This document shows, one piece after another, positions 18,357 to 39,296 of a DNA stretch of 64,000 bases. The DNA is taken from contig JBNJNM010000013.1 in NCBI GenBank assembly GCA_052426225.1, positions 558,001 to 622,000 on the forward strand, in the 5' to 3' direction. Position 1 is the stretch's first letter. Each line of letters opens with the position of its first letter. Made by a program: the position numbers and the translations under genes. The notes beneath the pieces were generated by a model. That model searched no databases and was not told where the DNA came from. It saw only the letters and a list, made by a program, of their open reading frames with translations. Origin of the DNA: Zancudomyces culisetae HAW-14-8 (lineage: Eukaryota; Fungi; Kickxellomycota).

Positions 18357-19856
18357 ATGTCCTCTACCCAATACAAAGTCTTTCTACAATCATGCTTGGC
18401 CAAGAGTTTTTTAACCCAGGATCAGCTAATAGAACAATGCAATACTATTTTTGACCAAGGTCGGTAAATCTCTCTCTCTCCTCCCCATCTCCCCTTTTTA
18501 ATACTTTACTTTTTAAATAATCACTATATACCACTCATATAATAATAATAATAATGTTAATAATAATAATAATTACAGTAAAAGGACCGCTTCAATAAAT
18601 ACATTAACCATATAAACTAAACCGAGTAGACTGTGATCCTTCTCGGATAATCGAAAAAACCAAATCAACTTTTTCACAGCTTGGCCTAGATTTAATCTCT
18701 GGAATCGACCAAATAACCGGAATCACTTACTGGTGTGTAGTACGTAACCCTGCCTCTTTAATTTTTTATTCTTCGTAAAATATATATATACACACACATA
18801 TATGTATATGTATGTATATATATGCCTATACTCAAACTAAAACTAGACAAAATTATTCAAAGCTCTATTTCACTTGTTTAATCTTTACCTTTACATTTAT
18901 TATTATTATTCCTATCTTAGATCGATCACAAAAACGATTCTTTGCTTTTGAATTCCACAAAGCACTCATCGATAGAAGTGCTTTATTACAAACTACTAGT
19001 AAGTAATCACCCTCTAACAAAAACACGCATAATTCCTCGTTTTCCCTTTACCTCCCCTCTTCCGTTTTCGTTTTTTGGAATAATATTTATTTCTCTAAAA
19101 AATAAAAAGATTTAATAATAATAATAATAATAACACTAATACATTTATTTATTTTGAAAACATAGATAGAGGCCATAGTTACCCGAGACGACAAAAAGTA
19201 CTATATATCTAGTCACGATGCGCTCAAGAAATCGGCTGAGCTTAATTCTCCCTCATTCAGAACAATCGACGCCCAGCGCGCACTGGATAAGTTCACCACT
19301 GACGGTTTGTTGAGCAATATCCACGGCTACTATGTATTGGGCAATCGGGCGTTTCTAGAATTGGTTGGAAGTGGGTATCTTAAAGACTTTTACGAGGATT
19401 TTTTGGTTGAATGCAAAATTTGCAATCAAATTGCCACCACAGTACGTTTTATTTTATTTTATGTTATTTATATGTTATTACATTATATTATATCTTAATA
19501 TATCAAAAAAGATTAAAACTACTCTGAAAATGTGAAAAGAAATATAGTATGCATTGTAATTCATCTGTATTATGGGTCAATAGGGAAGATACTGCGAGGG
19601 TTGCGGTGCTTCGTTTCATATCTATTGTTTTAATCACTTGAAAGCAGGCAGAAAAAATAAAACTCATGTGTATGATAGCGATGACGACAATGAGAGCGAT
19701 ACTCCAACAGCTGCAGACGACAAACCAGGCACTGTAACATGTTTAAACTGCTCCGAAATCCTGGATCAGAGTTCTTTATTTGGTACCATCGAAACACCAG
19801 ATGATGATGATGATGCGGGTGCCCACCCGAACAAACGAAGGAGGAAGGAGGTGTGA
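18357..19856 (+). CDS. NSE1: Smc5/6 complex non-SMC subunit Nse1 (winged helices plus RING-like finger), about 279 aa; 5 exons
   Basis: Exons 18357-18459, 18630-18739, 18921-18998, 19166-19441, 19584-19856 sum to an open frame. Motifs YKVFLQ, GYYVLGNRAFLEL and CKIC...GRYCEGCGASFHIYC...CLNC. Confidence 0.8.
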
Positions 19857-21520
19857 AATTTTCTGTATTTTCTCCTTTTCTCAATCAGGTCAATATTACT
19901 TGAAATCTTTCGGAAATTGAGATTATAAAAGAAAGTAAAGTAAAGTGGAGCGGGATGATAATGAAGTATTAAATCGAGAGTTTTTCTAAGATCGAACATG
20001 ATAAAAAAAAATGGAGGAAAAAGTTTAGTTCTCAGAGTAAAATTCATATTGATAGTATTAGCATAGTATATTGTGTAAAACTTCATTACACACACACACA
20101 CACTCTCTCTCTCCTCCACCCGTCCCTCCCCCCCCCCCCCTTCCGCCCTCTCCCAAAAAAAAAGCGAATATTTGCAGTTTAAAGTCTTTACTTCTTTTAA
20201 TCTACTGTTTATAGAAATAATACTTTGTACAAAAGCACAACCTCATTTCAAATACCATGTTAGTATCCAGTATGGGATTGTGATTAATAGGGATATTGTT
20301 TTTTAACATTTTATCAAAATCACTTGTTATCTGGTAACTAACATTACGTTCATTTTGGGTTATGTTTTTTTAGTATTTGTTCTTATAGTATAGTAAAAAT
20401 ATAGTTGGAAAACAAACCTAACAGTAAACGCAAACATCCTTGACGTTATTCAAAAACAGGAACAAAAACAAAAAAAGAGGTTTTACTTTGCCGAAACTTG
20501 GCGGAAATAATTGAACACTTCGATTTCAATAAGATCAGGGTCTTATCTTTTAGATAGGTACGAGGTTGAAAAGTAAAAAAATGGCGGGGGGAGGGGGGAG
20601 GAGGGGAGGGGAATAAAGAGTGTAGGAGTATAGTAGTATCATAAAATGTTATCATTCACATATATTGAACAGCTTTTCTACATAGTGGTCGTCAATCACA
20701 TTAACAGGTGTGCAAGTATTAAGATAAGATAAAATAGGTAACCCTATATGTATCTTTGAAACGAGTTCCACTACCATATATATAGTGCTTTTGACTAGAT
20801 CATTAGCACTGGATAAAAGAAAAGAAAAGAAAAGAAAAGAAAAGAAAAGAAAAGAAAAAAACGGCATGTATAACCTTTTATAGTTCTCATTTTCCCTTTT
20901 TTTTGTAACAGGTAGGATCCCCCTCCTTATCTCCTTCCCTCCTTCCTTCATCCGCTTCATCCGTTTCTCTGCTCTGTATACCTTTTTTTCACAAGGAAAG
21001 AGTAAGAACAAAGATAAAAGAAGGTGTAAATTTATAAATACCATAAAAACAAATTCTCAGTCAATATCATATATAGTTATGATGCTGTTATCATTACAAT
21101 ATGTTTTACTAATTCGGCGTCAGTAAAGGTAGTTTAAGTTAACTAAATTGATAAACCAGAGTTACGAAATAATAAATAAACAAGTTGCATTTAATCCTTT
21201 CAGGTTTGCTTATCTCCTATATTCCTTAATTCAAGTAAAATAAAAAAAAGGGGGAAGAGGTAAAGGGGAAAGAGTGAAAGAGTGAAAGAGGGAAAGAGGG
21301 AAAGAGGGAAAAGGAGAAAGGGAAAAAGTATTATTATAAAGTACGGGTAAATGAACTAAAAAAAGAAAAACAAGAAATATATAAATATGAACCGGGTTCT
21401 TGTACTTGAATACGCACCCTTGGACTCTTTTGCAATATTCCACAATACTTTATTTTTTTTATACATTAGTATCAATTAAATACCAATATTTTGTATACTT
21501 TGAAACATTTGGAATAAAGA

Positions 21521-24201
21521 AAAAAAGCAACAACAATAATGGCCAGTTTTGTTTCAAGATTCTCCTTTTCAAGAGTTGGAAACTATAGTGCGAGGATACT
21601 TGCCCCACTGGGAAGACGTTCTCTTACCACAGCAAATTCGGTTTTGGACCGTAAGTTATTATTTTAGTTATTATTGTAACTGTTATTATTGTCCGTTTCT
21701 GTATTTACTTCCACCACTTTTACTGTTTTAACTATTCAGTTTTGAATTTTGTTTAGTAATAACTCATTGTATTATATTCCGTATGTTATAAATAGCTACA
21801 CTGGGACTCACAGGTATTTGAATTGTATACTCGACTATGTTTAACCACGTACACTTTGTATATGCAGATATGAAAGCACGTATATTTCCGACTACCATAA
21901 ATATTGCGTCTAACAAAATGTTGGTATCACAGATGAGCAAAAGGAGTTGTACGAAGCTGCATCGAGTTTTGCAGAAGCCGAAATGGCACCTATTATGTTG
22001 AAGGTAAGTATGCAAATACGGATATGGATACGGATAAAAATACGCATGAAAATAGGAATAGAAATAAGAGTACAAATAGGAATACAAAGTGTGGTAGTTA
22101 TGAGAGTGTTCCATTGTACTAAAGAAGAATATACATAAAAATACCAGACACGGTATTGTTTGGTAGTATAGTGTATGGAGTGTGTCTAGTAACACTCACT
22201 TTTGAATTTGATAAACAACCAAATAGCTTGACCAAGATGAAAACATGCCAAAAGAGTTGCTATTAAAAGCAGCAGAGTTGGGATTTGGTATGATATATAC
22301 ATTATATACAATAAATTATATATAAGCATACAGTTTGTACATAACTATTTGTGTTACACCATTTATAATGAATGGAAAAAAAAGTAAATGGATGAATATA
22401 TTTAAAAATAATACACAAATTTGGTGATGAGTGATACAAACTGTATAATGGAAAGGATATAAAACATATGACATACGGTATATATTACTGGTTTATAAAA
22501 TTTACCACACTTTACTGTGATATTGCGTGTAAATAGGTAAATTATATGTTTCCGAAAAGAGTGGAGGAGTGGGGCTAGGTAAGTGAGCAAGAGTATATAA
22601 TGGTGGTGGATATGATACTGTTGATGTATGGTTGTAGGAGATGTGATAAAGTGATAAAATGATAAAATGAATTTATAGATCGATTATCTACATCGGTCGT
22701 ATTTGAGGGGCTATCTAGAGGCGATGTGTCAACTACTGCATATCTTACTCTGCACAAGTAATTTGCCACTTCCATTTACTGTTTCATAATTTTTCACAAA
22801 TTATAACAACCCGTTGTTGTTAATATTTATATAGTATGTGTGCATGGATGATTGACAAGTTTGGAAACCAAAGTCAAAGGGACAAGTATCTGGAAAACCT
22901 GCTAAATATGGATGTAAGTACGAACGTTGTGTTTGTAACTGTGAGCAATTTATGTGCATCCCATCCATGTTTAATACTACTCACCTTTTTGTTGAAACAT
23001 GTAAATTACATTGTAAATAACCCCCTATGAAATACTACTTATGATACACCAGCATTTAGGATCATACTGCCTGACAGAACCTGGAGCGGGAAGTGATGCA
23101 GCATCATTATCAACAAGTGCAAAGAAGGATGGATCTAAATATATTCTGAACGGATCAAAGGCGTTTATTTCAAATGGTGGAGACTCTGATATATATATTG
23201 TTATGGCAAGAACAGGAGGGGCAGGGCCAAAGGGTATATCAACATTTATTGTTCCAAAAGACTCGCCTGGACTGAGTTTTGGAAAGAAAGAAAAAAAGGT
23301 TGGATGGAGCTCACAACCCACACGAGGTTAGTGTATTTCGTTTATATTTATATTGAGTTTTAGATTGATTGTGGTGTGGGTTTGTATACGGTTTAATGTT
23401 AGAGCACCAAGAAATTTGATATGAAGTCGTGAAAATATGGATGTAAAATGATGAAGGTAATGACGTTTACCAAAACACTGGGATTTGAATACCAAATATA
23501 GCTGTTATATTTGAAAACTGCGAAGTACCGGCGGAGAATTTAATGGGGCGGGAGGGAGATGGGTTCAAATTTGCAATGATGGGTCTAGACGGAACCAAAG
23601 TGAATATATGCAAGTATAATATTCACATACATTAGCTATTTCTTCGAAATTAATCATCTACTGCTGGTATTTATTCTTATTGAAATCCATATTAATTATT
23701 AACTATAACCGTATAATCAATAAAATCAAGGATATCAAATATGCTCAAATAGCGTCATGTAGCCTTGGTGGTGCTGATTCCAGCTTGCGTGCTGCTCTGG
23801 AACACTCTGCTGTCCGAAAACAGTTCGGTACCCCAATCTTTGATTTCCAAAATACCCAGTTTGAGTTGGCTGAAATGGCAGGCCGACTTAATGCTTCGAG
23901 ATTGATGGTTAGACAGGCAGCAAGGATGTTGGATGAAAAATCACCAAGTGCAGTAGCATTCTGTGCTATGGTAAGTCAAACTGAAATGGGCAATTCCATA
24001 TACTTGAGTTAATGTAAAAATTCAGACAACATTTGTAGCTATAACTGCTCTTTCCGTATGAACAAATAGGCCAAAGAGTTTGCAACAGATACATGTTTCA
24101 ATATCTGTAACCGATCACTACAATTGCATGGTGGATATGGATATCTTAAGGACTATCCAGTTCAACAGTATATGCGGGATACGCGTGTTCACCAGATTTT
24201 G
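21521..24201 (+). repeat. Direct repeat, copy A of the ~2.7 kb ACAD8 duplication
   Basis: Near-identical to 36564-39233, including most introns. Confidence 0.95.
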
Positions 24202-24264
24202 GGTGGAACTAGCGAAATAATGAAGGTCATAGTTTCTAGGTCACTCGCAAAACTCATTTCTTAA
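21539..24264 (+). CDS. ACAD8: Isobutyryl-CoA dehydrogenase-like paralog (copy 1), 418 aa, 11 exons; lacks the catalytic Glu
   Basis: Exons 21539-21650, 21796-21813, 21933-22003, 22227-22287, 22537-22578, 22679-22757, 22835-22913, 23053-23326, 23502-23609, 23753-23970, 24070-24264 (1257 nt, open; requires a GC donor at 23610). ACAD8-type motifs [65 protein letters not shown]; R/S-rich mitochondrial presequence. Confidence 0.85.
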
Positions 24265-24838
24265 TATATTTCTCTTGTTTTGTTTTGTTTTATTTTTTTG
24301 GGAAGGGTTGATATATGTACCAAGGGAAATTTAGTGGTCTCGTGGGAAATACTATTAAAATAAATCAATAGTAACATTTTTTAAACTTAACTCGAGAATT
24401 CTTGCAAAAAGATTAAAAAGTAGAGGTACTGAACAACACAGATGGTACTGAACACATATATTTGACTGGACGCAATGAATCGCGACTCAAAGATGTACTT
24501 GAAGCGACACATTAAAATAGTATTTAGAGCGAAAATACTGATGAGTAGAGAGTAACAATGATCATAGTGACAATGAAGAATTAACATATAGCTCTAGATC
24601 CTAATGTAGGAGTGTTTTTTTACGTTTTAATGTTTTTTTTTGTTTTATCACACACGTATTACGTAAATATTTAGTAATGCATGTTATTTCAATTTGTAAA
24701 AAGAGTCAACAGCTATAATTAAGATATGCACATTTTATGAGCTGGTGTTATTGCAGTTATCTTTATCAAACCATTTCGTATTTTATATTTTAGCACTTTG
24801 AAAAGCTAAATAGATGTAAAATAATTGTTGCGTATAAT

Positions 24839-25513
24839 ATTATCACCAAACAGCTTTCAAAGACAGATTATGCTGGAAAACAAGCCCACGTTGAGCTGGC
24901 CGAACGAATGCGAAAGAGAGACCCAGGTAGCGCTCCCCAGGTTGGCGACCGAGTTGCATATGTTATAATCAAGGCGGCCAAAGGTGCTGCCGCTTACGAG
25001 CGTGCTGAAGATCCAATCTATGTGCTGAACAATGGCCTTCCGATTGATACACACTACTACCTTGAAAATCAGCTTGTAAAACCTCTTACCAGAATTTTTG
25101 AGCCCATTTTAACCGAAAAAGTTGGTTCTTTGTTTTCTGGTGATCACACCCGCTCAATTCATCTGACCACTCCAAATACTGGTGCTTTAATGAGGTTTGC
25201 TGTAAGGTCAGAAACTTGTCTGGGTTGTAGAGTTCCTCTACCGCCTTCCAAAAAGTCAGCCGGGTCTAATGCTGTTTGTGTTCACTGTTTGCCCAAACTT
25301 CCCGAAATATATTTTGCAAATCTCCAAATTGCCAATGCTTGTCAGACTCGATACGCTAGATTGTGGACTGAATGTCAACGGTGCCAGTCAATAATGCACG
25401 AAGATGTTGTTTGTTCCAACAGCGATTGTCCCATATTTTATATGCGGACAAAGGCACAGCATGATAACAATCAACAGATAAAAGTGATGAAAAGGTTTGA
25501 TTTGAGCTGGTAG
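24839..25513 (+). pseudogene. POL3: Orphan 3' fragment of DNA polymerase delta catalytic subunit (end of polymerase domain plus CysA/CysB); open frame, ATG at 24908 would give 201 aa
   Basis: IITKQLSKTDYAGKQAHVELAERMRKRDPGSAPQVGDRVAYVII...EDPIYVL...YYLENQL, CLGC..CVHC (CysA), CQRCQ...CSNSDCPIFYMR (CysB). Homology stops near 24839, with an in-frame TAG at 24791; I found no upstream POL3 exons in the window. Identity is secure; functional status is uncertain. Confidence 0.75.
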
Positions 25514-25866
25514 TTTTTGAATAGCACTCGCCGCTTTTTTGGTTTATTCTACTCTTATTATATTGTTATTGATATTCTTTTATACACCATCTTTTATAAC
25601 TTGAGATATAGCTAGGAGATACCTTTATTTTGTATATATTAGCTGAATAAAGCATAGTTTTGATCCATATAGCTAGTGTGGGTGACAAAGTTGTATATAA
25701 GGTGTATTCGTAAATGGTGTACTTTATTTGCCGACATAAACAAACAAACAATATTACTATGGCACTTAGTGTACCATTCCTAACTTTTTGTTTTGTAAAA
25801 GGAAATACAAAGCAGACCTAAAAAAACAGACACAAAAAACGACATTTTTGCTGAGACACTTGCAGA

Positions 25867-26844
25867 TCAAACTCTCAGAAGTATCTTTCCTGTTGTTTTT
25901 CCAGCTTCAATAAAGCGGTGAGCATCAGCTGCATCTTTAAGGTCAAACTCCTTGCATATGTTAACCTTTAAACTTCCACTTTCAACCAGATCGAATAGTG
26001 TTGAGCATGCCTCAGTAAACTCTTCCCTTGTACGAACGTAATTAAAGACCCCCGGGCTTACTAGAGCTATCTCTTTTTCACTCAAAACACTGGACTCAAC
26101 TTTTGGAATCACTCCCGACGCATTACCGAACGAAACTAGAGTTCCACACCGTCTGAGTGAATCAAACGAAGCTTGGAATGTTGATTTTCCCACGCCGTCA
26201 AACACTGCATTTACCATCTGACCATTGGTGATCTCTTTAACTCGTGTGGGGACATCCTCTCTAGTATAATAAATGATATGGTCTGCTCCCGCATCAGTTG
26301 CTAACTTGGCCTTTTCCTCATTAGATGTGGTGCCTATCACAGTAGCACCATAGTGTTTACAGAGCTGAACAAGCAACTGACCTGTTCCCCCTGCTGCAGC
26401 ATGAACAAGGACTATGTCTCCTTTTTTAACGTTGTAAGCCCTCTTGACAAAAGTCACAGCAGTGAGCCCCTGAAGTAATGATGCAGATGCAGTATCTAGC
26501 GCCATCTGCTCTGGAACAATAGCAGCATTCACTGGGTCAACCAGGGTATATTCAGCATACGCGTTATGTGAAGATAGATATGCCACTCTACTACCAACCT
26601 CAAATCCAGTCACGTCAGATCCAACCTCCTCGACTATCCCGGCACCTTCATGGCCTAATACAAGAGGCATACTAGCTTTAAAAAGTCCGGTTCTAAAATA
26701 CGTCTCAAGAAAATTGAGCCCTACAAACTTGTTTTTAACAAGTATTTTGTTTTTTTCAATTTGGGGCTTGGGGATATCCAAGTATTTGATAACGCTGACA
26801 TCTCCTGGTTTTTCAATTCTGATGGCCTTCATTGTTGAGCTCAT
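25867..26844 (-). CDS. NADPH:quinone oxidoreductase, zeta-crystallin/Qor-like MDR enzyme
   Basis: GLNFLETYFRTG, LGHEGAG, LQGLTA, HAAAGGTG, VFDGVGK, SFGNASG, TTGKILL. First ATG at 26844; the frame is open upstream to a TTG at 26940. Confidence 0.9.
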   Translation of the reverse strand: MSSTMKAIRIEKPGDVSVIKYLDIPKPQIEKNKILVKNKFVGLNFLETYFRTGLFKASMPLVLGHEGAGIVEEVGSDVTGFEVGSRVAYLSSHNAYAEYTLVDPVNAAIVPEQMALDTASASLLQGLTAVTFVKRAYNVKKGDIVLVHAAAGGTGQLLVQLCKHYGATVIGTTSNEEKAKLATDAGADHIIYYTREDVPTRVKEITNGQMVNAVFDGVGKSTFQASFDSLRRCGTLVSFGNASGVIPKVESSVLSEKEIALVSPGVFNYVRTREEFTEACSTLFDLVESGSLKVNICKEFDLKDAADAHRFIEAGKTTGKILLRV

Positions 26845-27695
26845 TCTAATTTGAAATTGAGGTTTTGAAAATTGTACTATTGATTTTGCACTTATCTTTA
26901 GGAAATCGAAATTCTTTTTAAAAAGTTCTCTAGATTTCAAGTTGAACTATTTATTCTGTTAACACAGTAAATGTATCTTGATATATTTAACTTTAGGTAT
27001 GTTTTTTCTATGTCGAGGGGAGATCATTTCATGTATTTATAGACACAAGTCCACCCTCCCTCATCAACACCTACACACTCAAATCACCTCTGTCTTTTTG
27101 CATTACTAAGCACCTACAATAATGATAGTCTATAAAACGAGACGTAGAAAACAACAATAAAACATTTGTTTCTAGCAAATCAAGTTTAAGTCGGACATCT
27201 ACTCTTTATTCCTCAATGAATTATCTAATAAACACCACACCAACCACTAAAATAGTTGTTTTGCGTAATATTTACCTAATTTATTCTCTTTTGCTCTTCT
27301 AATGACGTCATATTCTCTGGGAATTGAGTAAATGAACATATCTCCCGTAGTACTTTTTCATATTGAAATGGGAACATTCTACATCTATGTTCAACTCCAG
27401 AGCTTCTTTTATATTGTATTAATCAGCAACCAGGATTTAGCTGGTCTACAAATAGGCCTTAAAAACCAATAAAAATTAAATGATAAACCATTCCAAGGAC
27501 CATAGGGTCAAAGCAAGGGTAATAATAGGAAACAATCCTACAACATTTCACGTGTTTTTTCGAATCGTTCGATGTTTTGATTTTAGTAGATTTCAAACTA
27601 CAATCATAAATACTAGAAACGTAAAAATACGCGTTTGTAATATATTAAGCGGAGTAATGTGTATTAAAAAACAATAATTGTATATTCTATGCTGA

Positions 27696-28518
27696 CTAAT
27701 TGGAGGTAGTAGTGGTGGTGGTAGAGGAAATATCCACCTTTTCTGCATGTACAAGATTTTCCTGAGTAGTTTTAGGAGGCGCTTGGTTATCCATTTGATT
27801 AGTGACAAGATCGTTGGCGGCAGCTGTTACAGAAATAGATTGTGGATCATTTCCTGCTTCTAGCTTTCTCTGTTTTTTCGCCTCGAGGTATCTATACTTT
27901 TTCCCCAATCTAATCGATGCCTCATACGCTAGGCGCCGTTCGTTCAAAACTGTTTTGATTCTGGACATGGATTTTTTACACTATGAGATATTCAGAAAAA
28001 ACATTAGAATAGTTCCGACTAAATACACATCGCTTTGTAAGAATAAATGTAGTGAAGAAAAAAGGTAAACCGTACCTTGATCATTCTTGCTTTGTTGGAG
28101 TAAAACTCTTCTGATATATTCAAGCTTTTTGCCAGAGCCCTTTGACCAGCCAAAACATTACATTCTTTCAGCAGGACGATCCATAGTTTTTGCAGATCCT
28201 CCCAACTTTTTGTTCTCAATTCAGCAGCTCTCCAAGCTCGTCCTGATATTTCACACAATTTACACGGTTAAATAATTGGATTTTATATTCATCATCTTGT
28301 TACTTTTATCATAAGTGTTTATGTTTGATTATTTGAAGGTTTATATTACCTGTATGGATTTTATCCTTTGGCAGGGACTGGTTTCCCTCGAAAAATTCTT
28401 CCAATCCTCGTAATTTACTACAGGTGTGAAATGAACTTTGTGCACCTATAGAAGTTCTATTGATTGTTAGCCCTGAAAATACCCTTGTTAGGTTTCCTAC
28501 TAATCCTCTCATTGCCAT
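27696..28518 (-). CDS. MRPL4: Mitochondrial ribosomal protein uL29m (MRPL47/Mrpl4); 3 exons
   Basis: Exons 28518-28350, 28242-28076, 27980-27696. Motifs GLEEFF...[32 protein letters not shown] and [13 protein letters not shown]. Confidence 0.88.
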
Positions 28519-29949
28519 ATTTATATATTTAATTGATTTTTGCAATTAATGTTAATCACACTTTTATCAAGAAGAGACAAACAAAACTTTTATTGTTTTT
28601 TTTAGCAGGTATTTTGATATACAACATCATACTATATCTCAAGAATATCAAATAAGCATAATTCAAAATGCTGATCGGGTAGGCGAAAAAGTTTAGGTAT
28701 TTTAAAATGCAAAACAGCAATATTTAGGTTTTTTTTAACTCAAATCATACTTTGAATATTCAATATCAGATGATAAGGCTTACTATCTTCTTGTGTATGT
28801 TAATATACATTACATCTTTTCTTCTAAGTCCTTCCACACGAAGCATAAATACATCTTGCTTCTACCTTGATGAATCACGGGGACTGGCACTCAAATCTTT
28901 TTTTTGCACAATTCATATATATGAGTTTTTGAAGTATTATCGCCATAATTTTATCAATCTAGTACCACCACTCGTGTGAATTTTTATTTGCAAGTCGCTG
29001 CTGAGCCACTGTATGCTTTCCATAAATCTGATATTTTCGACTGTACCATGGCATCACGCATTATACACATATGTGTATGTGAAATCCCAGGTAGAAACCA
29101 GCCAATATTACGTTTGCAATGAAAAAAAATGTGAAGACAGTACCTTTTTTTTTCTTGTTTACACGTAGTACTAGCCTGACAGTATTTTAACCGACGTTTT
29201 TGGAGTGATAGAAATATCAAATTAGAATACTGAGGGATAGAACGAGACGATTCTGCTAGTTTTTCTTTGCATCACCTATACCATCAATCACAGCCATAGG
29301 CGTTTCTGTGTTTGAGCATGTTTCTTATTGAAGCTTTTTATTGGTTTTAATATTCATTGGATTTTTTTTAGTTACTAACTTTGGTTTAATTTATTTTCTA
29401 TTTATTGCGATCTAATCAAGGAAAAAAACGTTTATGAAAAACCATTTCCACTAAAAAAAACCAGCAAATTAATTTTGCGCAATTACCTAACAATGTAAAT
29501 CAGTGTCAAGTGGAAAATACAAAAGTCAAAGCTGTTAATAATCCGGGAGTTCGTGCATATTGTTGTGAATGGGTGTATCAAAATATATTTTCTTATAATT
29601 CCACAGGTTCAACAATATCTGCAAAAAAATTTTTTGTATTTTTACAAATGTAGTCCCAACACTCGGCTTTTGAACTTTGACAGGTTTCTGTCTTAACTCA
29701 AAGTATACACGTGTTATAAACTAAAAATTTTATAGGCTAATGCTGATTTTGAAAAAAAAGTTCAAAGTTACTATTATGGCGATTTGGAACAGAGAATAAA
29801 ACAAAAAAAAACAATATAAATAGATCCAAACTTTCTCCTGTCAGGATTCTATCATTCATCTTAAATAACAGATAGATACAGAAAGAGGCAAAATCCCAAA
29901 GAGTCTGCACCAACAGCTCTTAGTATTTTCCAGAAATCAGACCAGCAAA

Positions 29950-31419
29950 ATGAGTGATCATGAAAAAGCAATGGGAATTGAGGTTGAGGATAGCCATGGC
30001 AGAGAAGGAGAAAGACATGAGGTTAATAAGGGTTTGGAGTTTACTGAAGAGGAGGTATCCTTGCTAAGAAGGGCACTAAAAAAAATTGACATAAGAGTAT
30101 TGCCGATTATGTACCTTATGTACCTTGCGGGAGCAATGGATAGATATAACATGGGTGCGGCATTGATCAATGGAATAATAGAGAAATTAGATCTGACATC
30201 AACAGATCAAGGAAATATTAACTCTCTGTTTTTCACCACATACATTGCTATGGAACCATTTGCCAATATAATCTTGAAAAAAACCCGCCCATCATTCTGG
30301 TTTCCATTTATTGGAATATCGTGGTCAATCACATGTATGTGTATGGCAGCAGTAACAAATGCAACACAGGCAGTAATTATCAGACTGCTTTTGGGTATCT
30401 TTGAAGCAGGATTCACACCAGGAATGATCACATACTTGGCATACTGGTACACCAGAGAAGATCTAGGTTCGCGAATGTCCATCATGTTTTCAGCGCATCC
30501 AGCCTCAGGGATTGTCAATCTGCTATATGGAGCATTCGCCTCAATAAAAATTGGCAAATTGATAGCCTACCAGTCCATTTTTATCTTTGGTGGAACAATA
30601 ACACTGGTTATTGCCATTGCAGCTATCTTTGTAATTGAAGACTACCCCGAGCATGTAAAGTTTTTAACAGAAAAAGAAAAAGCTCTTGTTGTGAAGAGAA
30701 TCAATGCTAGTCAGGGAAGTGCCGAAAGATCCCATGTCACATTTAAATCCACTCTCGAAACTATCCTCGACTGGAAGGTGTGGGCATTTGCCATTCTTAA
30801 CTTGTCCAGAACCGCCTCCTTGCTGATTTTGGGGCTTATTGGTCCAACCATTATAAAATCGTTTGGATTTTCAAGATCTGAAGCTACATTCCTGTTTGCA
30901 GTTGTGTCAGCAATTGGTACTTGTAGTACAATTACATTTGCATTTGTATTCCAAAAAGTCCCATACTGGATTCGAATCGTAGGTGCCGATATCATAACAG
31001 CCGCTTTCTTTGCAGTAGTTGCGTTTTCCACTAATAATGTCGTACGACTCGTCTTTATGTTTGCTCTAGGAATCCCAGTCTATGCTATTTTCCCAATAGC
31101 TACAAGTTGGATGTCAGTAAATGCTGGTAGTACTCAAAAGCGTGCGTTGATGTCTGCGGTATTTGCGATGGTTGGTAATGTTGTTGGTCTTGCTGTTCCG
31201 TATTTGTTCACCACTGCAACTGCACCAAAGTACATCGCTGGATATTCACTTGCTTTTGGATTGTATGCTCTATCAATTGTAGTAGCACTAACACTTGCGT
31301 TTGCACTCAACAAGGCAAACAAACAGCGGGAAGCGCATCCCCAAGATGTATCTCATTTGACTCCTGAAGAACAAAGAGCTATGCACGATTTCCACCCAAG
31401 CTTTAGGTATATACTCTAA
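29950..31419 (+). CDS. MFS transporter, anion:cation symporter (Dal5/Tna1-like) family
   Basis: Intronless, 489 aa, about 12 hydrophobic segments. Motifs KKIDIRVLP, DRYNMG, RLLLGIFEAG..PG...YLAYWY..EDLGSR and C-terminal HPSFRYIL. Confidence 0.9.
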   Translation: MSDHEKAMGIEVEDSHGREGERHEVNKGLEFTEEEVSLLRRALKKIDIRVLPIMYLMYLAGAMDRYNMGAALINGIIEKLDLTSTDQGNINSLFFTTYIAMEPFANIILKKTRPSFWFPFIGISWSITCMCMAAVTNATQAVIIRLLLGIFEAGFTPGMITYLAYWYTREDLGSRMSIMFSAHPASGIVNLLYGAFASIKIGKLIAYQSIFIFGGTITLVIAIAAIFVIEDYPEHVKFLTEKEKALVVKRINASQGSAERSHVTFKSTLETILDWKVWAFAILNLSRTASLLILGLIGPTIIKSFGFSRSEATFLFAVVSAIGTCSTITFAFVFQKVPYWIRIVGADIITAAFFAVVAFSTNNVVRLVFMFALGIPVYAIFPIATSWMSVNAGSTQKRALMSAVFAMVGNVVGLAVPYLFTTATAPKYIAGYSLAFGLYALSIVVALTLAFALNKANKQREAHPQDVSHLTPEEQRAMHDFHPSFRYIL

Positions 31420-32210
31420 TAGATATAAATGTAACCAATCCCGCTAAACTCACTACTACTTGTGCGTGTATTTGGATTTTATTTGACTTTAAATTTTATG
31501 TATTTTGTTTATGTTGTTTTATTAAATATTATTTCTACATTATTCAAACACGCTGTAGTGGATAACAGTATGAAGGTGTCAGTACCTCTATGTTTCTTTT
31601 TATAAATTGTATATAATATTGATTTTTTTGAAAGACTGTAAACATGCCACTCCAATGAAGAATGCATTAACATACACTTCCAACAAAACTGAACATCACA
31701 GAAGTAAGAAGAAATACCTCAAGTCTTTAGAAGAATCATATAAAGCGCCTATAATTTAGGTTTGGATGTGGGGGGGGGGGGCTCACCAGTGGTTAAATAT
31801 TATCAAAAATTTAAACTAACTTGCCCACTGTCGTCTTTACTATTCGGTTTATACACTAACGATATATTTAACGAAATAAAAGACGTAGCTGCAACAGACC
31901 TATCTAACTTGAAACCTCTAATATCAACTAAATTACAAGGATTACAGTTTGATAATAGCAGGACTCTTGTAAGTACACTAAAAAAAGAAAATTTCAAGGT
32001 ACCAGTACCAGCAGAAATGAAGAGATTGAAATGTTTGCAAGTATCAATGTGGCAGGAATGAAGTAATGTTTAGATAAAGTAAAATAAAAAATGCTTAAAA
32101 AACATAACTGTTATAAAAAAGGTAAAGTGGGAGATACCAGAACATATTCTAAAAATTGGTAGATACCATCCCACACGCGTACCCCAAACTTGGTATCAAA
32201 TGCTAGGAAT

Positions 32211-34595
32211 CTACCTGTCACCCATAGAACTGACTGCTGCGTTAAACCCAGCGTGTGTGTTGTCTTTGTTGATGAATTCACATCCTGAAGTGGTATCACA
32301 CCTTTGTGCCTGTTCTATAGGGTTGTATAATAGCTCAGTAAAATCAACCCCTGAAACATAATCCTTATGCTTAGATATGGGGAAATTTTGGTCAAATGTT
32401 GGAGACTGGGTTTTAGACATCTCTTTGTAATTCGCGCTCAAAATAGAATGATAAACACGTTCAAGCATCTTTTTGCACTGCTCAAGCAATGCAGTATTTT
32501 GAAGAGATGTATAACGATTAACAACCTTTACAAAATATTTGCTAGGATCATCATCCAGGCTTGGGTTGTTATTAATATGAATTTCATGATTCTGTGGCTG
32601 TTTCTTTGATATACCGAGGTCCCCCAATATCAAATTGAGTTTTTCTGCCTCCTTGATAGCTGGTTTCAAATCGATTGCCATTATAATTTGTTTTCCATCA
32701 CTTTCATTATCCAAAGGCAATAAAAACTCGCTATTTTTACTCAGACTCTCTTTTGCAAAAATTCGACTTAGTAGGAATGGTTCATGAATCTTGGAGGAAA
32801 GAGTGTTGAAGCAGCACTCTCGTTTGTAATAGTTGCTTCCATTTGGAACTAGCCATGGATTGTAGTCATATGATGAAAGCATCATCTTTTTAAAGTTCTC
32901 GGGGATGTTTTTAAACTTGGAATTGGCCTTATCATAGCTTTTTTTAACATCAGATATATTGTTAGCCAAATAAAAATACATCTTTACTAGTGGGGTTGTT
33001 GCTTTAAGCTGCTCAAAATATTCGATTATTACTTTTTTGCCATTTACAATTGCATTGTGTCTACTCAGGTTCCTGATATACTCTAGATTTGTGAGGTGCC
33101 TGAAAACATGAGAGGTCAAATAGTTTAACTCTATATCAAACTTTTCTATTGGAAACGTTGAAAGTAGCCAGTAAAACACTTCTATAAAGTAGATAGTATT
33201 GTTGATTAATATAACTTTGGCAGCTTTTACTCTCTCTGGAGGAATATCCACATTCTCATAGTAAGCTACTTCTGAAGCATTCAAATGAAGATTGGTCACA
33301 CAGGTATTCAGCATCAGTGTACAGTATCGTAGTATAAAGTACTCAATGTTCATTGCGTTTACTATGCCTGGATTGCGTACTGAAAACGCCAATATATTTT
33401 CCAGTTCATTATAAAACCTTATAACCATCATTCTCTGAAACACTGTAGCGTTTGTAAACAATTTCAGGTAGCGTCGATAATCTAGTTCCATTTCCTTTGC
33501 TATTGTAATTTCTCTCCGGTTGATAAACGTTACAATTCTGTATCTTATTTTATTTAGCATCACATATCAACCAAATGTATCAAACTTGAATTCCCCTTGG
33601 TTGTTTAGAATTACACCACCATTATATACCGCTTTGGAGTTTGACAATACAAAACTGGTATTACAATGCCATAGACGATCATTGCTGGGTAGGTTTACAA
33701 AAATGTCTTTGAGCTGTATAGCTGGCAGCAGTGTCAAACCCTCAGATACTAACATGCAATAAATTTATATAGACCACCAAAGACGTCTTCCAAGTTCCTT
33801 TTCTACTATTGAATATTTACCCTCTTTCTCAGGTGTGCTGACGGAATGTGCATCCACCATATGCAATTTCATTGAAATGGCCAGCTTTGTTGCCAAATGG
33901 AAATATTTTGTGCATTGCGATGCAAGTCCAGTGACGGAATAATATCTACTTAGCACCTGCATTGTCCATATGCCCAAACAATCTGGATGAATAAATATGT
34001 TTTTCATGTATTCGGTGGTATAGTTTAATGCTCGTTTACGCCTCTCTCGAGTAAATACTTTAAAAAACTTGTCATCTTTTAATACAGTTGATCCCATCAG
34101 TAAAAGAGTACAAACCACGTACTTTGGCACTTGAAAACTCTTTACGTTTTGTATAAACTGGGGAATTCTTACAACATTTGCAAGCAAAGGATAACGATAC
34201 ATAAACATGTACATTAGCTCATCTATCACATCTCGTAGGAGTCTTGATAACTCTATATCCTCCGCATCCCTACCAATTATATTCTGAATGTCCACATCAA
34301 CGATGCAGGCATCTGTCATCAAATTCTTTATTTCATGCCTTATACCATGATTGGAGCTTTCATTGGCTGTGGTTTTCATTTTTTTGCTCTGTTTTTTCAA
34401 TTCTTCAACTCTTTTTTGTATATCTGCGAGTTTTTTAAACAAAGGCTCATTCACGGGTCTCTTATGCACATTTCTTTTTTCATTAACTCTAAACGTTATT
34501 ATGTATTTTTTGTAGGTATTGTCAGCATTTGACTTTGCCCTTGTTCGTTTGCCACCACCAGCAGATTCTTCTCTTTCAGAATTTTTTTGAGCCAT
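32211..34595 (-). pseudogene. Fungal-specific transcription factor (middle-homology-region type) gene interrupted by two in-frame stops
   Basis: Three track ORFs (33765-34712, 33567-33755, 32211-33563) share one frame, separated only by TAA at 33765-33767 and TGA at 33567-33569. Motif ATKLAISMKLH...EKELGRRLWWSI*I resembles the fungal_trans consensus. Start placed at ATG 34595 (an upstream in-frame start at 34712 is possible). Confidence 0.6.
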
Positions 34596-36563
34596 TCTAT
34601 AAAAGTAGAGTAGAAATAATCCTGGAATGAGTTGATTGATACGAGATAGTAATAACTGCCACTCATACCAAGTACTGTGTTTATATACTACTATTTTTAT
34701 TTTTAGGCTCATATCTTTAGTGTTTTGCCCTTTTTGATACTTGGAATATGAAACTCAATCTTTTCATATATCCGTACTTCTGACCAACTCCTTTGATTGA
34801 TTGAAAATAGTTGATATTTTGAATTGGGAACAAAAAAAACAAACACATATCTTCTAACAAAAACAAAAACAGGATGAAAAAAAGATGAAAAAAAGATGAA
34901 ATAAAGATGAAAAAAAAAAAGATGAAAGCTCAACTCAACTTTGTTATTCCCAACAAACTCAATTCAATATAATCTCGAATCTATTCAAATCTCAGTTAAT
35001 ATACTGGGGTTTATGTAACATTCATCTAAAGATGCCAGTACAACCGAGAAAATTTCCTATGGTAACATAAAAACATACCGCTATTAGATGAAAACCACTA
35101 CCTCATCTTTTCCAGATTAAGCCTAGGCTTCCAAAACAAAACACTCGCAACATTTTCAATATTCCATTCATCGGAATGGCTCTAATTAAATATCAGCTGA
35201 GTGGGTGTGATTTACGAGATACTAATATTATAGATAAATATATATTCGTATCTACTTGGTTATCTTTTCAAAGCTAATATATACAACTAGATCTAACCCA
35301 CCTTATTACCTTCACTGAAATACAACTATATATCCCTTGTGTCGTGGAGACAATCTTGTAAACAAAGTCTTTTTTTTCAGTTATTTACTTTATGATACCC
35401 TTCCCATTTGTTAATCTCACTTCAGTAACAACAACAAAGTATTTTTTTATACTTCGTATCAGGACGACGGCTTTAAATTCAATCAAAAACTAAGGTACAT
35501 CAAGTAGTATGATGCTATGGCCTAACATTATGGATTTTACTGTCTCAAATATCCAGCTTATTAAGTGTGAATATACTAAGACGAACCAAAATGGTCAAAT
35601 ACGATTCAATTGGTTTTCCGGCTAAACTGTACTTAATATCCTCACACTAATTATTTCACATATTGTAGAGTCTGAACTTTTATTCAGGCCGCAATCCCAT
35701 CTGTTCTTGTTAAAATTCGTTTTTGTTTTACTCGTTAGTATATTGTAATGACGCAACTAGATCCTTACACTAAAAAAAAATCAAATAAATAAAAATACAA
35801 TACCAGTAAAATTCTAGGGCTCCAGTCATAAATTTGGAGTCGATTAGATATTGTTGTAAAGTTTACATTGTTCTTGCATTATGGGATTTTGCATGGAATA
35901 TATATCACTTATTTGTAGCCATTTTTTACATTAGAAAATTAGTAAATGTGAGATAAAAACGATTGAGATTATAGCGCGATTTAGCATGCTAAGGACGTGT
36001 ATTCGCATAAATCAAGTAGAACAAACTGATACTCGAGCTATATCATTTATCAGTGCTTGATTTATTTCATTATACATCATTTATACCTTAATATTTGGTG
36101 GCTTTTCGGGAACCTGATGGCTAGTGCTGCCTCTGCTTAGGTCATGAATATTTTCAGCTTTTTAAATAAAGCCCAAATAGCTATGAAACAAAAAGAAGAA
36201 AAAAACCAGCATAATTAACCGACTCTAGCACGCAGATATTTGCTGACGAATAGTCTTTTATGAAGTAATCAAGTTATGCGATTTTATTCGCACCAACTCA
36301 TTTTATAAAAACGCAATTTTGCTAGACCAATATTTCACCACAGACCAGCTGGGATAGCAATTCCACTCGCTATTCAAGCTTGTTTCGGATAAAGCGAATA
36401 TTCAAATAGCGCACCAAATTGGCTGGTAGTTACACAGTCAATCCTTACAAATTGTGAGACACACACACAAACAACACTAAAAGAGATATACAAAAGATAG
36501 TATAAATTAGTACGTTTTCGCACCAACCGAAGTAGATTAGATAAACACAATTCCCATAAAAAC

Positions 36564-39233
36564 AAAAAAGCAACAACAATAATGGCCAGCTTTGTTTCAA
36601 GATTCTCCTTTTCAAGAGTAGGAAACTATAGTGCGAGGATACTTGCCCCACTGGGAAGACGTTCTCTTACCACAGCAAATTCGGTTTTGGACCGTAAGTT
36701 ATTATTTTAGTTATTATTGTAACTGTTATTATTGTCCGTTTCTGTATTTACTTCCACCACTTTTACTGTTTTAACTATTCAGTTTTGAATTTTGTTTAGT
36801 AATAACTCATTGTATTATATTCCGTATGTTATAAATAGCTACACTGGGACTCACAGGTATTTGAATTGTATACTCGACTATGTTTAACCACGTACACTTT
36901 GTATATGCAGATATGAAAGCACGTATATTTCCGACTACCATAAATATTGCGTCTAACAAAATGTTGGTATCACAGATGAGCAAAAGGAGTTGTACGAAGC
37001 TGCATCGAGTTTTGCAGAAGCCGAAATGGCACCTATTATGTTGAAGGTAAGTATGCAAATACGGATATGGATACGGATAAAAATACGCATGAAAATAGGA
37101 ATAGAAATAAGAGTACAAATAGGAATACAAAGTGTGGTAGTTATGAGAGTGTTCCATTGTACTAAAGAATATACATAAAAATACCAGACACGGTATTGTT
37201 TGGTAGTATAGTGTATGGAGTGTGTCTAGTAACACTCACTTTTGAATTTGATAAACAACCAAATAGCTTGACCAAGATGAAAACATGCCAAAAGAGTTGC
37301 TATTAAAAGCAGCAGAGTTGGGATTTGGTATGATATATACATTATATACAATAAATTATATATAAGCATACAGTTTGTACATAACTATTTGTGTTACACC
37401 ATTTATAATGAATGGAAAAAAAAGTAAATGGATGAATATATTTAAAAATAATACACAAATTTGGTGATGAGTGATACAAACTGTATAATGGAAAGGATAT
37501 AAAACATATGACATACGGTATATATTACTGGTTTATAAAATTTACCACACTTTACTGTGATATTGCGTGTAAATAGGTAAATTATATGTTTCCGAAAAGA
37601 GTGGAGGAGTGGGGCTAGGTAAGTGAGCAAGAGTATATAATGGTGGTGGATATGATACTGTTGATGTATGGTTGTAGGAGATGTGATAAAGTGATAAAAT
37701 GATAAAATGAATTTATAGATCGATTATCTACATCGGTCGTATTTGAGGGGCTATCTAGAGGCGATGTGTCAACTACTGCTTACATAACCATTCATAAGTG
37801 AGTTTCGTTATTTTGCTTGTATGTAACACGTTAGATACTAAAACGTCATGATTTCGGTATGAAATATATAGTATGTGCGCTTGGATGATTGACAAGTTTG
37901 GAAACCAAAGTCAAAGGGACAAGTATCTGGAAAACCTGCTAAATATGGATGTAAGTACGGATGTTGTGTTTGTAACTGTGAGCAATTTATGTGCATCCCA
38001 TCCATGTTTAATACTACTCACCTTTTTGTTGAAACATGTAACTTGTATTGTAAATAACCCCCTATGAAATACTACTTATGATACACCAGCATTTGGGATC
38101 ATACTGCCTGACAGAACCTGGAACGGGAAGTGATGCGGCATCACTATCAACAAGTGCAAAGAAGGAAGGATCTAAATATATTCTGAACGGATCAAAGGCG
38201 TTTATTTCAAATGGTGGAGACTCTGATATATATATTGTTATGGCAAGAACAGGAGGGGCAGGGCCAAAGGGTATATCAACATTTATTGTTCCAAAAGACT
38301 CGCCTGGACTGAGTTTTGGAAAGAAAGAAAAAAAGGTTGGATGGAGCTCACAACCCACACGAGGTTAGTGTATTTCGTTTATATTTATATTGAGTTTTAG
38401 ATTGATTGTAGATTGGGTTTGTATACGGTTTAATGTTGGAGCACCAAGAAATTTGATATGAAGCCGTGAAAATATGGATGTAAAATGATGAAGGTAATGA
38501 CGTTTACCAAAACACTGGGATTTGAATACTAAATATAGCTGTGATATTTGAAAACTGCGAAGTACCGGCGGAGAATTTAATGGGGCGGGAGGGAGATGGG
38601 TTCAAGTTTGCAATGATGGGTCTAGATGGTGGACGAATAAACATATGTAAGTATAACAAATATTGTCATTTTCTGTTACTAATTAATTTATTTATTTAAT
38701 CCGGACTTTTATTTATTAATACTTCACAATCCGTGCGTGATATTGTTGGTTTAATCTATGGATACTTCGAATATGCTCAAATAGCATCATGTAGTCTTGG
38801 TGGTGCTGATTCCAGCTTGCGTGCTGCTCTAGAACACTCTGCTGTCCGAAAACAGTTCGGTACCCCAATCTTTGATTTCCAAAATACCCAGTTTGAGTTG
38901 GCTGAAATGGCAAGCCGACTTAATGCTTCGAGATTGATGGTTAGACAGGCAGCAAGGATGTTGGATGAAAAATCACCAAGCGCAGTAGCATTCTGTGCTA
39001 TGGTAAGTCAAACTGAAATGGACAATTCCATATGCTTGAGTTAATGTAAAAATTCAGACAACATTTGTAACTATAACTGTACTTTCCATATGAACAAATA
39101 GGCCAAAGAGTTTGCAACAGATACATGTTTCAATATCTGTAACCGGTCACTACAATTGCATGGTGGATACGGATATCTTAAGGACTATCCAGTTCAACAG
39201 TATATGCGGGATACGCGTGTTCACCAGATTTTG
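36564..39233 (+). repeat. Direct repeat, copy B of the ~2.7 kb ACAD8 duplication
   Basis: Near-identical to 21521-24201. Confidence 0.95.
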
Positions 39234-39296
39234 GAAGGAACTAACGAAATCATGAAAATTATAGTTGCTCGTTCCTTGTTTAAATTGCTATATTAG
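36582..39296 (+). CDS. ACAD8: Isobutyryl-CoA dehydrogenase (copy 2), canonical active site; 11 exons
   Basis: Same exon structure as copy 1, all GT-AG. Retains [18 protein letters not shown] and [11 protein letters not shown], with the catalytic Glu codon GAA at 39234-39236. Confidence 0.9.

Follow-up and report, generated by a model that had tools for sequence, protein, structure and literature searches.

Two positions have been described for the catalytic base of acyl-CoA dehydrogenases (ACADs) (PMC11153573), and several enzymes with the ACAD fold do without the usual glutamate. The closest described precedent is IaaF, the benzylmalonyl-CoA dehydrogenase of Aromatoleum aromaticum, in which a YEG motif has become GGG and a 2-carboxyacyl-CoA is decarboxylated without removal of the C2 proton, so that decarboxylation replaces proton abstraction (PMC8360864). 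Both Glu positions are emptied in Ch1DH (Asn241, Thr363), where a few pocket exchanges changed the reaction, and the bacterial 3-sulfinopropionyl-CoA desulfinase also has the fold without the catalytic Glu (PMC9293079). Here we describe a 64,000-nucleotide stretch of the fungus Zancudomyces culisetae HAW-14-8 (contig JBNJNM010000013.1, positions 558,001 to 622,000; hereafter the window), which holds two genes for ACAD8, the isobutyryl-CoA dehydrogenase (IBD), both on the + strand, 15 kb apart and with unrelated flanks. Copy 2 is a normal ACAD8 with Glu376 (Glu type, or E-type). Its sequence places copy 1, with good support, in a recurring base-free mitochondrial ACAD8 variant marked by Leu103, Ser/Thr254 and Gly376, which is here called the G-type. 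Human ACAD8 positions are given in mature numbering, and site equivalences rest on alignment.

Reading both genes confirmed the two motif changes of a preliminary description of this locus, namely ILGGTSEI in copy 1 (GGT at 24202-24204) versus ILEGTNEI in copy 2, and DGTKV (23588-23602) versus DGGRI. Gly399 of the copy 1 model aligns with human Glu376, Thr277 with Gly254, Lys278 with Arg255 and Leu126 with Ile103. The last of these, an Ile-to-Leu exchange at 22750-22752, is a third signature site that lies outside the region first described; Ile103 is a residue that we take to be part of the pocket floor of ACAD8. The MCAD-like gene of the same genome has a Glu aligned with Gly399, and the IVD-like gene has a Glu aligned with Thr277, in agreement with the two base positions known for the family (PMC11153573). 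Because Gly399 and Thr277 align to both Glu positions, neither known catalytic base is present in copy 1 as judged by alignment, which upholds the earlier claim; the helix-G Glu that precedes the conserved Arg in LCAD and IVD is replaced by Thr277. The earlier verdict of a catalytically dead protein holds for ordinary alpha,beta-dehydrogenation but not beyond that reaction.

By descent copy 1 is an ACAD8. The best match of its exon at 24070-24261 is human ACAD8 (1RX0), the nearest solved relative by sequence and fold; it matches the chimpanzee ACAD8 protein at 61%, nests inside ACAD8 in the tree, and shares Leu375, the flavin- and CoA-binding motifs and a mitochondrial-type N-terminus with ACAD8. 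It differs from 1RX0 in Gly for the defining Glu376, Thr for Gly254, Leu for Ile103 and Lys for Arg255. Copy 1 is, on these alignments, a descendant of ACAD8 that is not to be classed as a working isobutyryl-CoA dehydrogenase.

The three changes recur in other fungi. A word search with the last exon led to a fragment in which Gly stands at the position of the Glu, and the locus of that fragment (L029) holds an intron-bearing ACAD8 with LTLH, NGSR and ILGGANE, that is, with the same three changes. The 117 protein matches comprised 100 with Gly254-Arg-Glu376, 15 with Ser/Thr254 and Gly376, one with Ser254 whose C-terminus is missing, and one odd Glu type. Among 209 ACAD8 relatives readable at the three sites, which include related strains and are not independent rows, all 33 Gly376 proteins had both Ser/Thr254 and Leu103, versus 0 of 176 Glu376 proteins with Ser/Thr254 and 2 of 176 with Leu103. 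G-types were found in Podila, Linnemannia, Actinomortierella, Dissophora, Gamsiella, Entomortierella and Mortierella, in two subgroups and always in species that also have the Glu type; cultured Mortierella alpina, Linnemannia elongata and Podila verticillata carry both. The two proteins of Podila verticillata are KFH62080.1 for the G-type and KFH68333.1 for the Glu type. The motifs of Entomortierella chlamydospora (GTRVNI and ILGGTSEI) are almost those of copy 1. A second ACAD8 gene of Gonapodya sp. JEL0774 has Leu103 and Ser254 on a contig that ends before the 376 codon, leaving the C-terminus missing, and the G-type is probably present there as well. From most other fungi and from animals, in a limited sample that was without other Harpellales or Kickxellales ACAD8, the gene was retrieved without a G-type.

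Databases label the G-type proteins isobutyryl-CoA dehydrogenase, which leaves dozens of fungal proteins annotated with a reaction that they cannot catalyse by the known mechanism. No publication on the G-type, and no eukaryotic ACAD8 system of such a kind, was found in the literature searched, a coverage with most subscription journals outside it; the preliminary description had likewise known of none. A general library search with the exon showed no ACAD8 variant lineage, the copy 1 motif used as an exact DNA pattern had no match in metagenomes, and there was no close relative of the Podila exon in metagenomes and no G-type among their ACAD8-like matches. One further variant was set aside as a probable pseudogene (P0006, with P0264 and P0265; L028:951-1546): this eukaryotic ACAD8 copy has Gly376 but keeps Gly254, has an in-frame stop and lies beside a normal sister sequence (L030). 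Two Glu-type loci also deserve mention. The Gonapodya prolifera gene model at L120:10001-15295 covers two Glu-type ACAD8 copies in tandem, which resemble each other at about 90% and seem to be separated by an assembly gap, and the Glu-type ACAD8 of Polychytrium aggregatum (P0430) has Ser for Arg255 and an odd following segment, which may be a gene-model error.

The two proteins of the window offer a natural experiment: both are 418 amino acids long, their presequences are identical, and they differ at 15 residues, three of which are the recurring signature. The differences are unevenly spread (Table 1). The longest run identical between the two genes is 615 nt, against a maximum of 187 in 2000 shuffles. 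Three islands, A to C, are deeply diverged. The 5' edge of each coincides with a changed pocket codon or lies shortly before one, and the divergence extends into the following intron or into the 3' flank. Within island codons the proportion of synonymous differences (pS) is 0.86, which is saturated, and that of nonsynonymous differences (pN) is 0.22 (Fisher p 7e-9), versus 0.047 and 0.003 outside; the island codons are under strong purifying selection. We infer from this mosaic that the pair is an old duplicate under repeated gene conversion, with some segments not overwritten. Homology between the copies begins about 20 nt before the ATG (window 21514-21538) and stops at the stop codon. The two genes therefore have unrelated promoters and 3' ends and may differ in their regulation.

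Table 1. Features of the two ACAD8 genes, in window coordinates
Feature	Position	Strand	Remarks
ACAD8 copy 1 (base-free, G-type)	21539-24264	+	11 exons, 418 aa
Copy 1 exons 1-6	21539-21650, 21796-21813, 21933-22003, 22227-22287, 22537-22578, 22679-22757	+	
Copy 1 exons 7-11	22835-22913, 23053-23326, 23502-23609, 23753-23970, 24070-24264	+	
ACAD8 copy 2 (normal)	36582-39296	+	same 11 exons, 418 aa; Glu376 codon 39234-39236
18-nt micro-exon	21796-21813 (copy 1), 36839-36856 (copy 2)	+	restores segment present in relatives
Predicted intron with GC donor, copy 1 only	23610-23752	+	GT in copy 2; intron position common to relatives
Homogenised tract	21514-22739	+	3 substitutions and 2 small indels versus copy 2, introns included
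Asp117 (human Cys94)	22723-22725	+	in all G-types and copy 2; just before helix
Unconverted island A	22740-22844	+	Leu124, Leu126 (22750-22752), then intron
Unconverted island B	23590-23737	+	Thr277 (23594-23596), Lys278 (23597-23599), Val279, then intron
Unconverted island C	24203 to stop (24264)	+	begins at Glu376-to-Gly codon 24202-24204

The islands were defined from the window alone, before the Mortierellaceae were compared. Only four differences are fixed between 15 G-type and 14 Glu-type Mortierellaceae proteins (model positions 125, 126, 277 and 399), and all four fall inside islands A to C, which make up 35 of 376 codons. At three of them (126, 277 and 399) copy 1 agrees with the G-type and copy 2 with the Glu type; for three independent sites, the chance of such overlap is roughly (35/376)^3, about 1 in 1200. 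The preliminary description had suggested a search of related genomes for conserved paralogs, and the variant is indeed widespread and conserved. The ratio of nonsynonymous to synonymous substitution rates (dN/dS) is 0.11 between two Podila G-type genes, which favours function over neutrality: in the Mortierellaceae the G-type is under purifying selection. In Linnemannia, the complete G-type protein can be read from a contig of SRR6256851 that lacks four introns of the genomic gene, so the gene is transcribed and spliced there. The G-types do not vary in their flavin- and CoA-binding motifs, and the predicted fold of the Podila protein (pLDDT 89) lies within 1.0 A root-mean-square deviation of 1RX0. 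Taken together, the G-type is very probably a functional, selected ACAD8 variant kept alongside normal ACAD8.

Whole-protein trees need three changes to the G-type. Copies 1 and 2 are sisters and fall with Zoopagomycota proteins, the Mortierellaceae G-types are nested within the Glu types of that family, and the Gonapodya gene is placed with its own paralogs. A single G-type clade was rejected on these trees (approximately unbiased test, p 1e-6), a test that is weakened by conversion, and one ancient duplication followed by conversion could give the same tree. In island C the background residues of copy 1 are common with copy 2 and not with the Mortierellaceae G-types, and for this reason the sequences incline us, by a modest degree, towards convergence over a single ancient duplication. 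Either history implies function.

The preliminary description had left the choice between a pseudo-enzyme or partner chain and new chemistry. The second is better supported, because the changes form a fixed pocket set, the flavin and CoA motifs are invariant and no ACAD neighbour was seen in the Mortierellaceae flanks, and the partner reading is less so. The pocket appears specifically rebuilt: a cavity takes the place of the Glu carboxylate, the second base position carries a hydroxyl, and Leu replaces Ile103. By analogy with IaaF, our tentative first choice, somewhat short of an even chance, is that the G-type catalyses the oxidative decarboxylation of a short 2-carboxyacyl-CoA, for example methylmalonyl- or ethylmalonyl-CoA. 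CoA and FAD would be bound as in ACAD8, given the conserved binding motifs, and the 2-carboxylate of the substrate would occupy the cavity left by the Glu376-to-Gly exchange, held, to judge from its position, by the hydroxyl of Ser/Thr254. Loss of CO2, for which IaaF is the precedent, would yield the enolate that Glu376 normally makes, and transfer of the C3 hydride to FAD would then convert methylmalonyl-CoA into acryloyl-CoA or ethylmalonyl-CoA into crotonyl-CoA, substrates suggested by the short ACAD8 pocket. The enzyme could serve as a B12-independent exit for methylmalonyl-CoA or as a repair route for ethylmalonyl-CoA.

The genome encodes a methylmalonyl-CoA mutase, an additional carboxyltransferase besides acetyl-CoA carboxylase (L122, not confirmed as PCCB) and a malonyl-CoA decarboxylase, and 2-carboxyacyl-CoA substrates are therefore likely to be present. 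The B12-dependent mutase is full length, with a 772-aa open frame (G000:C11:3094725-3096305; L121). Early fungi commonly have B12-dependent enzymes (PMC8085122), which together with the encoded mutase makes a B12-independent methylmalonyl-CoA exit plausible. The fuller proposal, that fungi apparently arrived three times from ACAD8, via the same three substitutions, at a mitochondrial base-free ACAD that oxidatively decarboxylates methylmalonyl- or ethylmalonyl-CoA, is possible but doubtful on this analogy. If true, it would be a eukaryotic 2-carboxyacyl-CoA dehydrogenase, of which none was found in the literature searched, and whose reaction has until now been demonstrated for bacterial IaaF alone; it would give methylmalonyl-CoA an alternative fate in B12-using early fungi, and would bear on propionate handling and acryloyl-CoA biocatalysis.

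IaaF is the best candidate for an enzyme that works like the G-type, since both combine the ACAD fold with Gly for the catalytic Glu. Unlike the G-types, which derive from ACAD8, it is prokaryotic, probably sits on a separate family branch, takes bulky substrates and is encoded in iaa operons. No iaa-like neighbours were seen around copy 1, and the full GGG motif is absent from copy 1 and all 35 G-types, which have LGG. Copy 1 does not appear to be a member of IaaF, and may at most work alike. Several points weigh against decarboxylation. The substrate is suggested by geometry and one bacterial precedent, and the G-types keep Leu375 where IaaF has a Gly; the authors of the IaaF study attribute the space for the carboxyl group to the loss of the Tyr (PMC8360864). 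The flanks of three Mortierellaceae G-type genes hold no neighbourhood that points to a substrate. The islands alone are no proof of selection, since a conversion mosaic is also seen in the neighbouring duplicated Pol delta/quinone reductase block. Copy 1 itself is the only G-type with Lys for the nearly invariant Arg255 (Arg in 35 of 35 others), and has a GC splice donor.

Selection and a kept flavin site count equally for some other base-free reaction on a short acyl-CoA, such as beta-elimination of a leaving group as carried out by the desulfinase, enoyl-CoA reduction in which water donates the proton, or dehydrogenation by a base at a new position, which we regard as rather unlikely. The emptied Glu positions of Ch1DH and the desulfinase set a precedent for it (PMC9293079), and Asp117, present in 33 of 33 G-types and only 8 E-types, offers a weak candidate for an alternative base. 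This residue is also found in copy 2 and in Gonapodya Glu-type genes, lies within the converted tract, and is no fixed difference within the Mortierellaceae. Ch1DH acquired a new base, Asp91, whereas the G-type pocket yielded no acid specific to the type, and copy 1 has acquired neither an acidic nor a basic group that copy 2 lacks. Going by numbering, Asp91 would fall near an invariant Met, and Asp117 lies at the start of the N-terminal pocket helix, before it rather than in it. The NCBIfam models for the desulfinase and for acryloyl-CoA reductase scored far below cut-off and no higher than for the Glu type (desulfinase, NF042439: Podila G-type 264 versus 600 bits).

It is unlikely that the G-type is non-catalytic, either as a partner subunit that joins the Glu type in mixed tetramers or as an acyl-CoA-binding regulator or sink. 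Its constant company of the Glu type would fit such a role, and with identical presequences and only 15 differing residues mixed tetramers are likely to form if both proteins are made. Non-catalytic partners do exist in the mycobacterial ChsE1-ChsE2 alpha2beta2 ACADs, which like the present pair combine one chain without the catalytic Glu and a Glu-bearing paralog. The partner chains of the ChsE type are highly divergent, have lost their flavin contacts and come from adjacent genes. The G-types, by contrast, keep invariant flavin contacts and show few fixed differences from the Glu type; copies 1 and 2 are 15 kb apart rather than an adjacent co-transcribed pair, and no ACAD was seen in the flanks read beside three Mortierellaceae G-type genes. 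A structural chain needs no fixed triad, yet the same three replacements recur in separate lineages. Moreover, normal ACAD8 is a homotetramer that manages without a G-type in most of the other fungi and animals sampled. Should the G-type nonetheless act as a ligand-binding or partner subunit, a eukaryote would have a non-catalytic ACAD8 partner, something of which no report was found.

Decay or mis-splicing of copy 1 in this fungus, with the type functional elsewhere, is quite improbable. The 418-aa frame, earlier described as intact, is open over 11 exons including an 18-nt micro-exon, but depends on the predicted GC donor at 23610, where the exon end is non-ideal; the corresponding donor is GT in four of four G-type relatives checked. 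That donor, the Lys at Arg255 and the duplicated fragments that copy 1 adjoins in a rearranging region would all suit decay. Against it, every other splice site is canonical, the intron keeps AAGT at +3 to +6 despite a diverged body, the island codons are under the strong purifying selection already noted, and the three islands have not been overwritten by copy 2. A gene model of 412 amino acids was rejected as it left out the micro-exon, whose equivalent is visible at the relative locus L029; with it both genes encode 418. An assembly artefact, or a neutral duplicate that resembles other fungi by chance, is barely credible: collapsed reads can produce long identical tracts but cannot give an open frame whose three changed sites equal fixed differences of another fungal family, and the flanks of copy 1 are unique and its islands occur nowhere else in the genome.

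A search of the genome (27,093,596 bases, 25 contigs) showed no third ACAD8 gene; its other ACAD genes are MCAD-, SBCAD-, IVD-, GCD- and ACAD10/11-like. Gly or Ala at the 376 site is also found in LCAD, IVD and myxobacterial ACAD8-like paralogs, but these have a compensating helix-G Glu (DGERV in the myxobacterial case) where copy 1 has Thr and the other G-types Ser or Thr. In the myxobacterial Gly376 gene this Glu aligns with Thr277, and the bacterial Gly376 matches were rejected as G-types since they represent a different solution. In Labilithrix and Myxococcus dinghuensis, ACAD8-like genes stand in tandem within a valine-type cluster (L032:860-3151, L034, L036:6035-7999), and one myxobacterial tandem paralog has a naturally moved base (Gly376 with a helix-G Glu). 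The engineered MCAD T255E/E376G mutant has the same base shift.

The stretch between copies 1 and 2 is mostly duplicated material. At 24838-28624 a block that lies about 20 kb before the window's first base is duplicated in inverted, mosaic form; the duplicate holds a DNA polymerase delta 3' end (218 aa, 100% identical to the source gene, with no 5' part) and a zinc-binding/quinone-reductase-type gene. It is followed by a major facilitator superfamily (MFS) transporter (29950-31419), with 94% copies on another contig, and by a fungal transcription-factor gene (31991-35667) with 95-96% copies on the same contig and roughly 20 others at about 70%. A spliced gene at 19167-19857, immediately upstream of copy 1, by eye resembles the Smc5/6 subunit Nse1.

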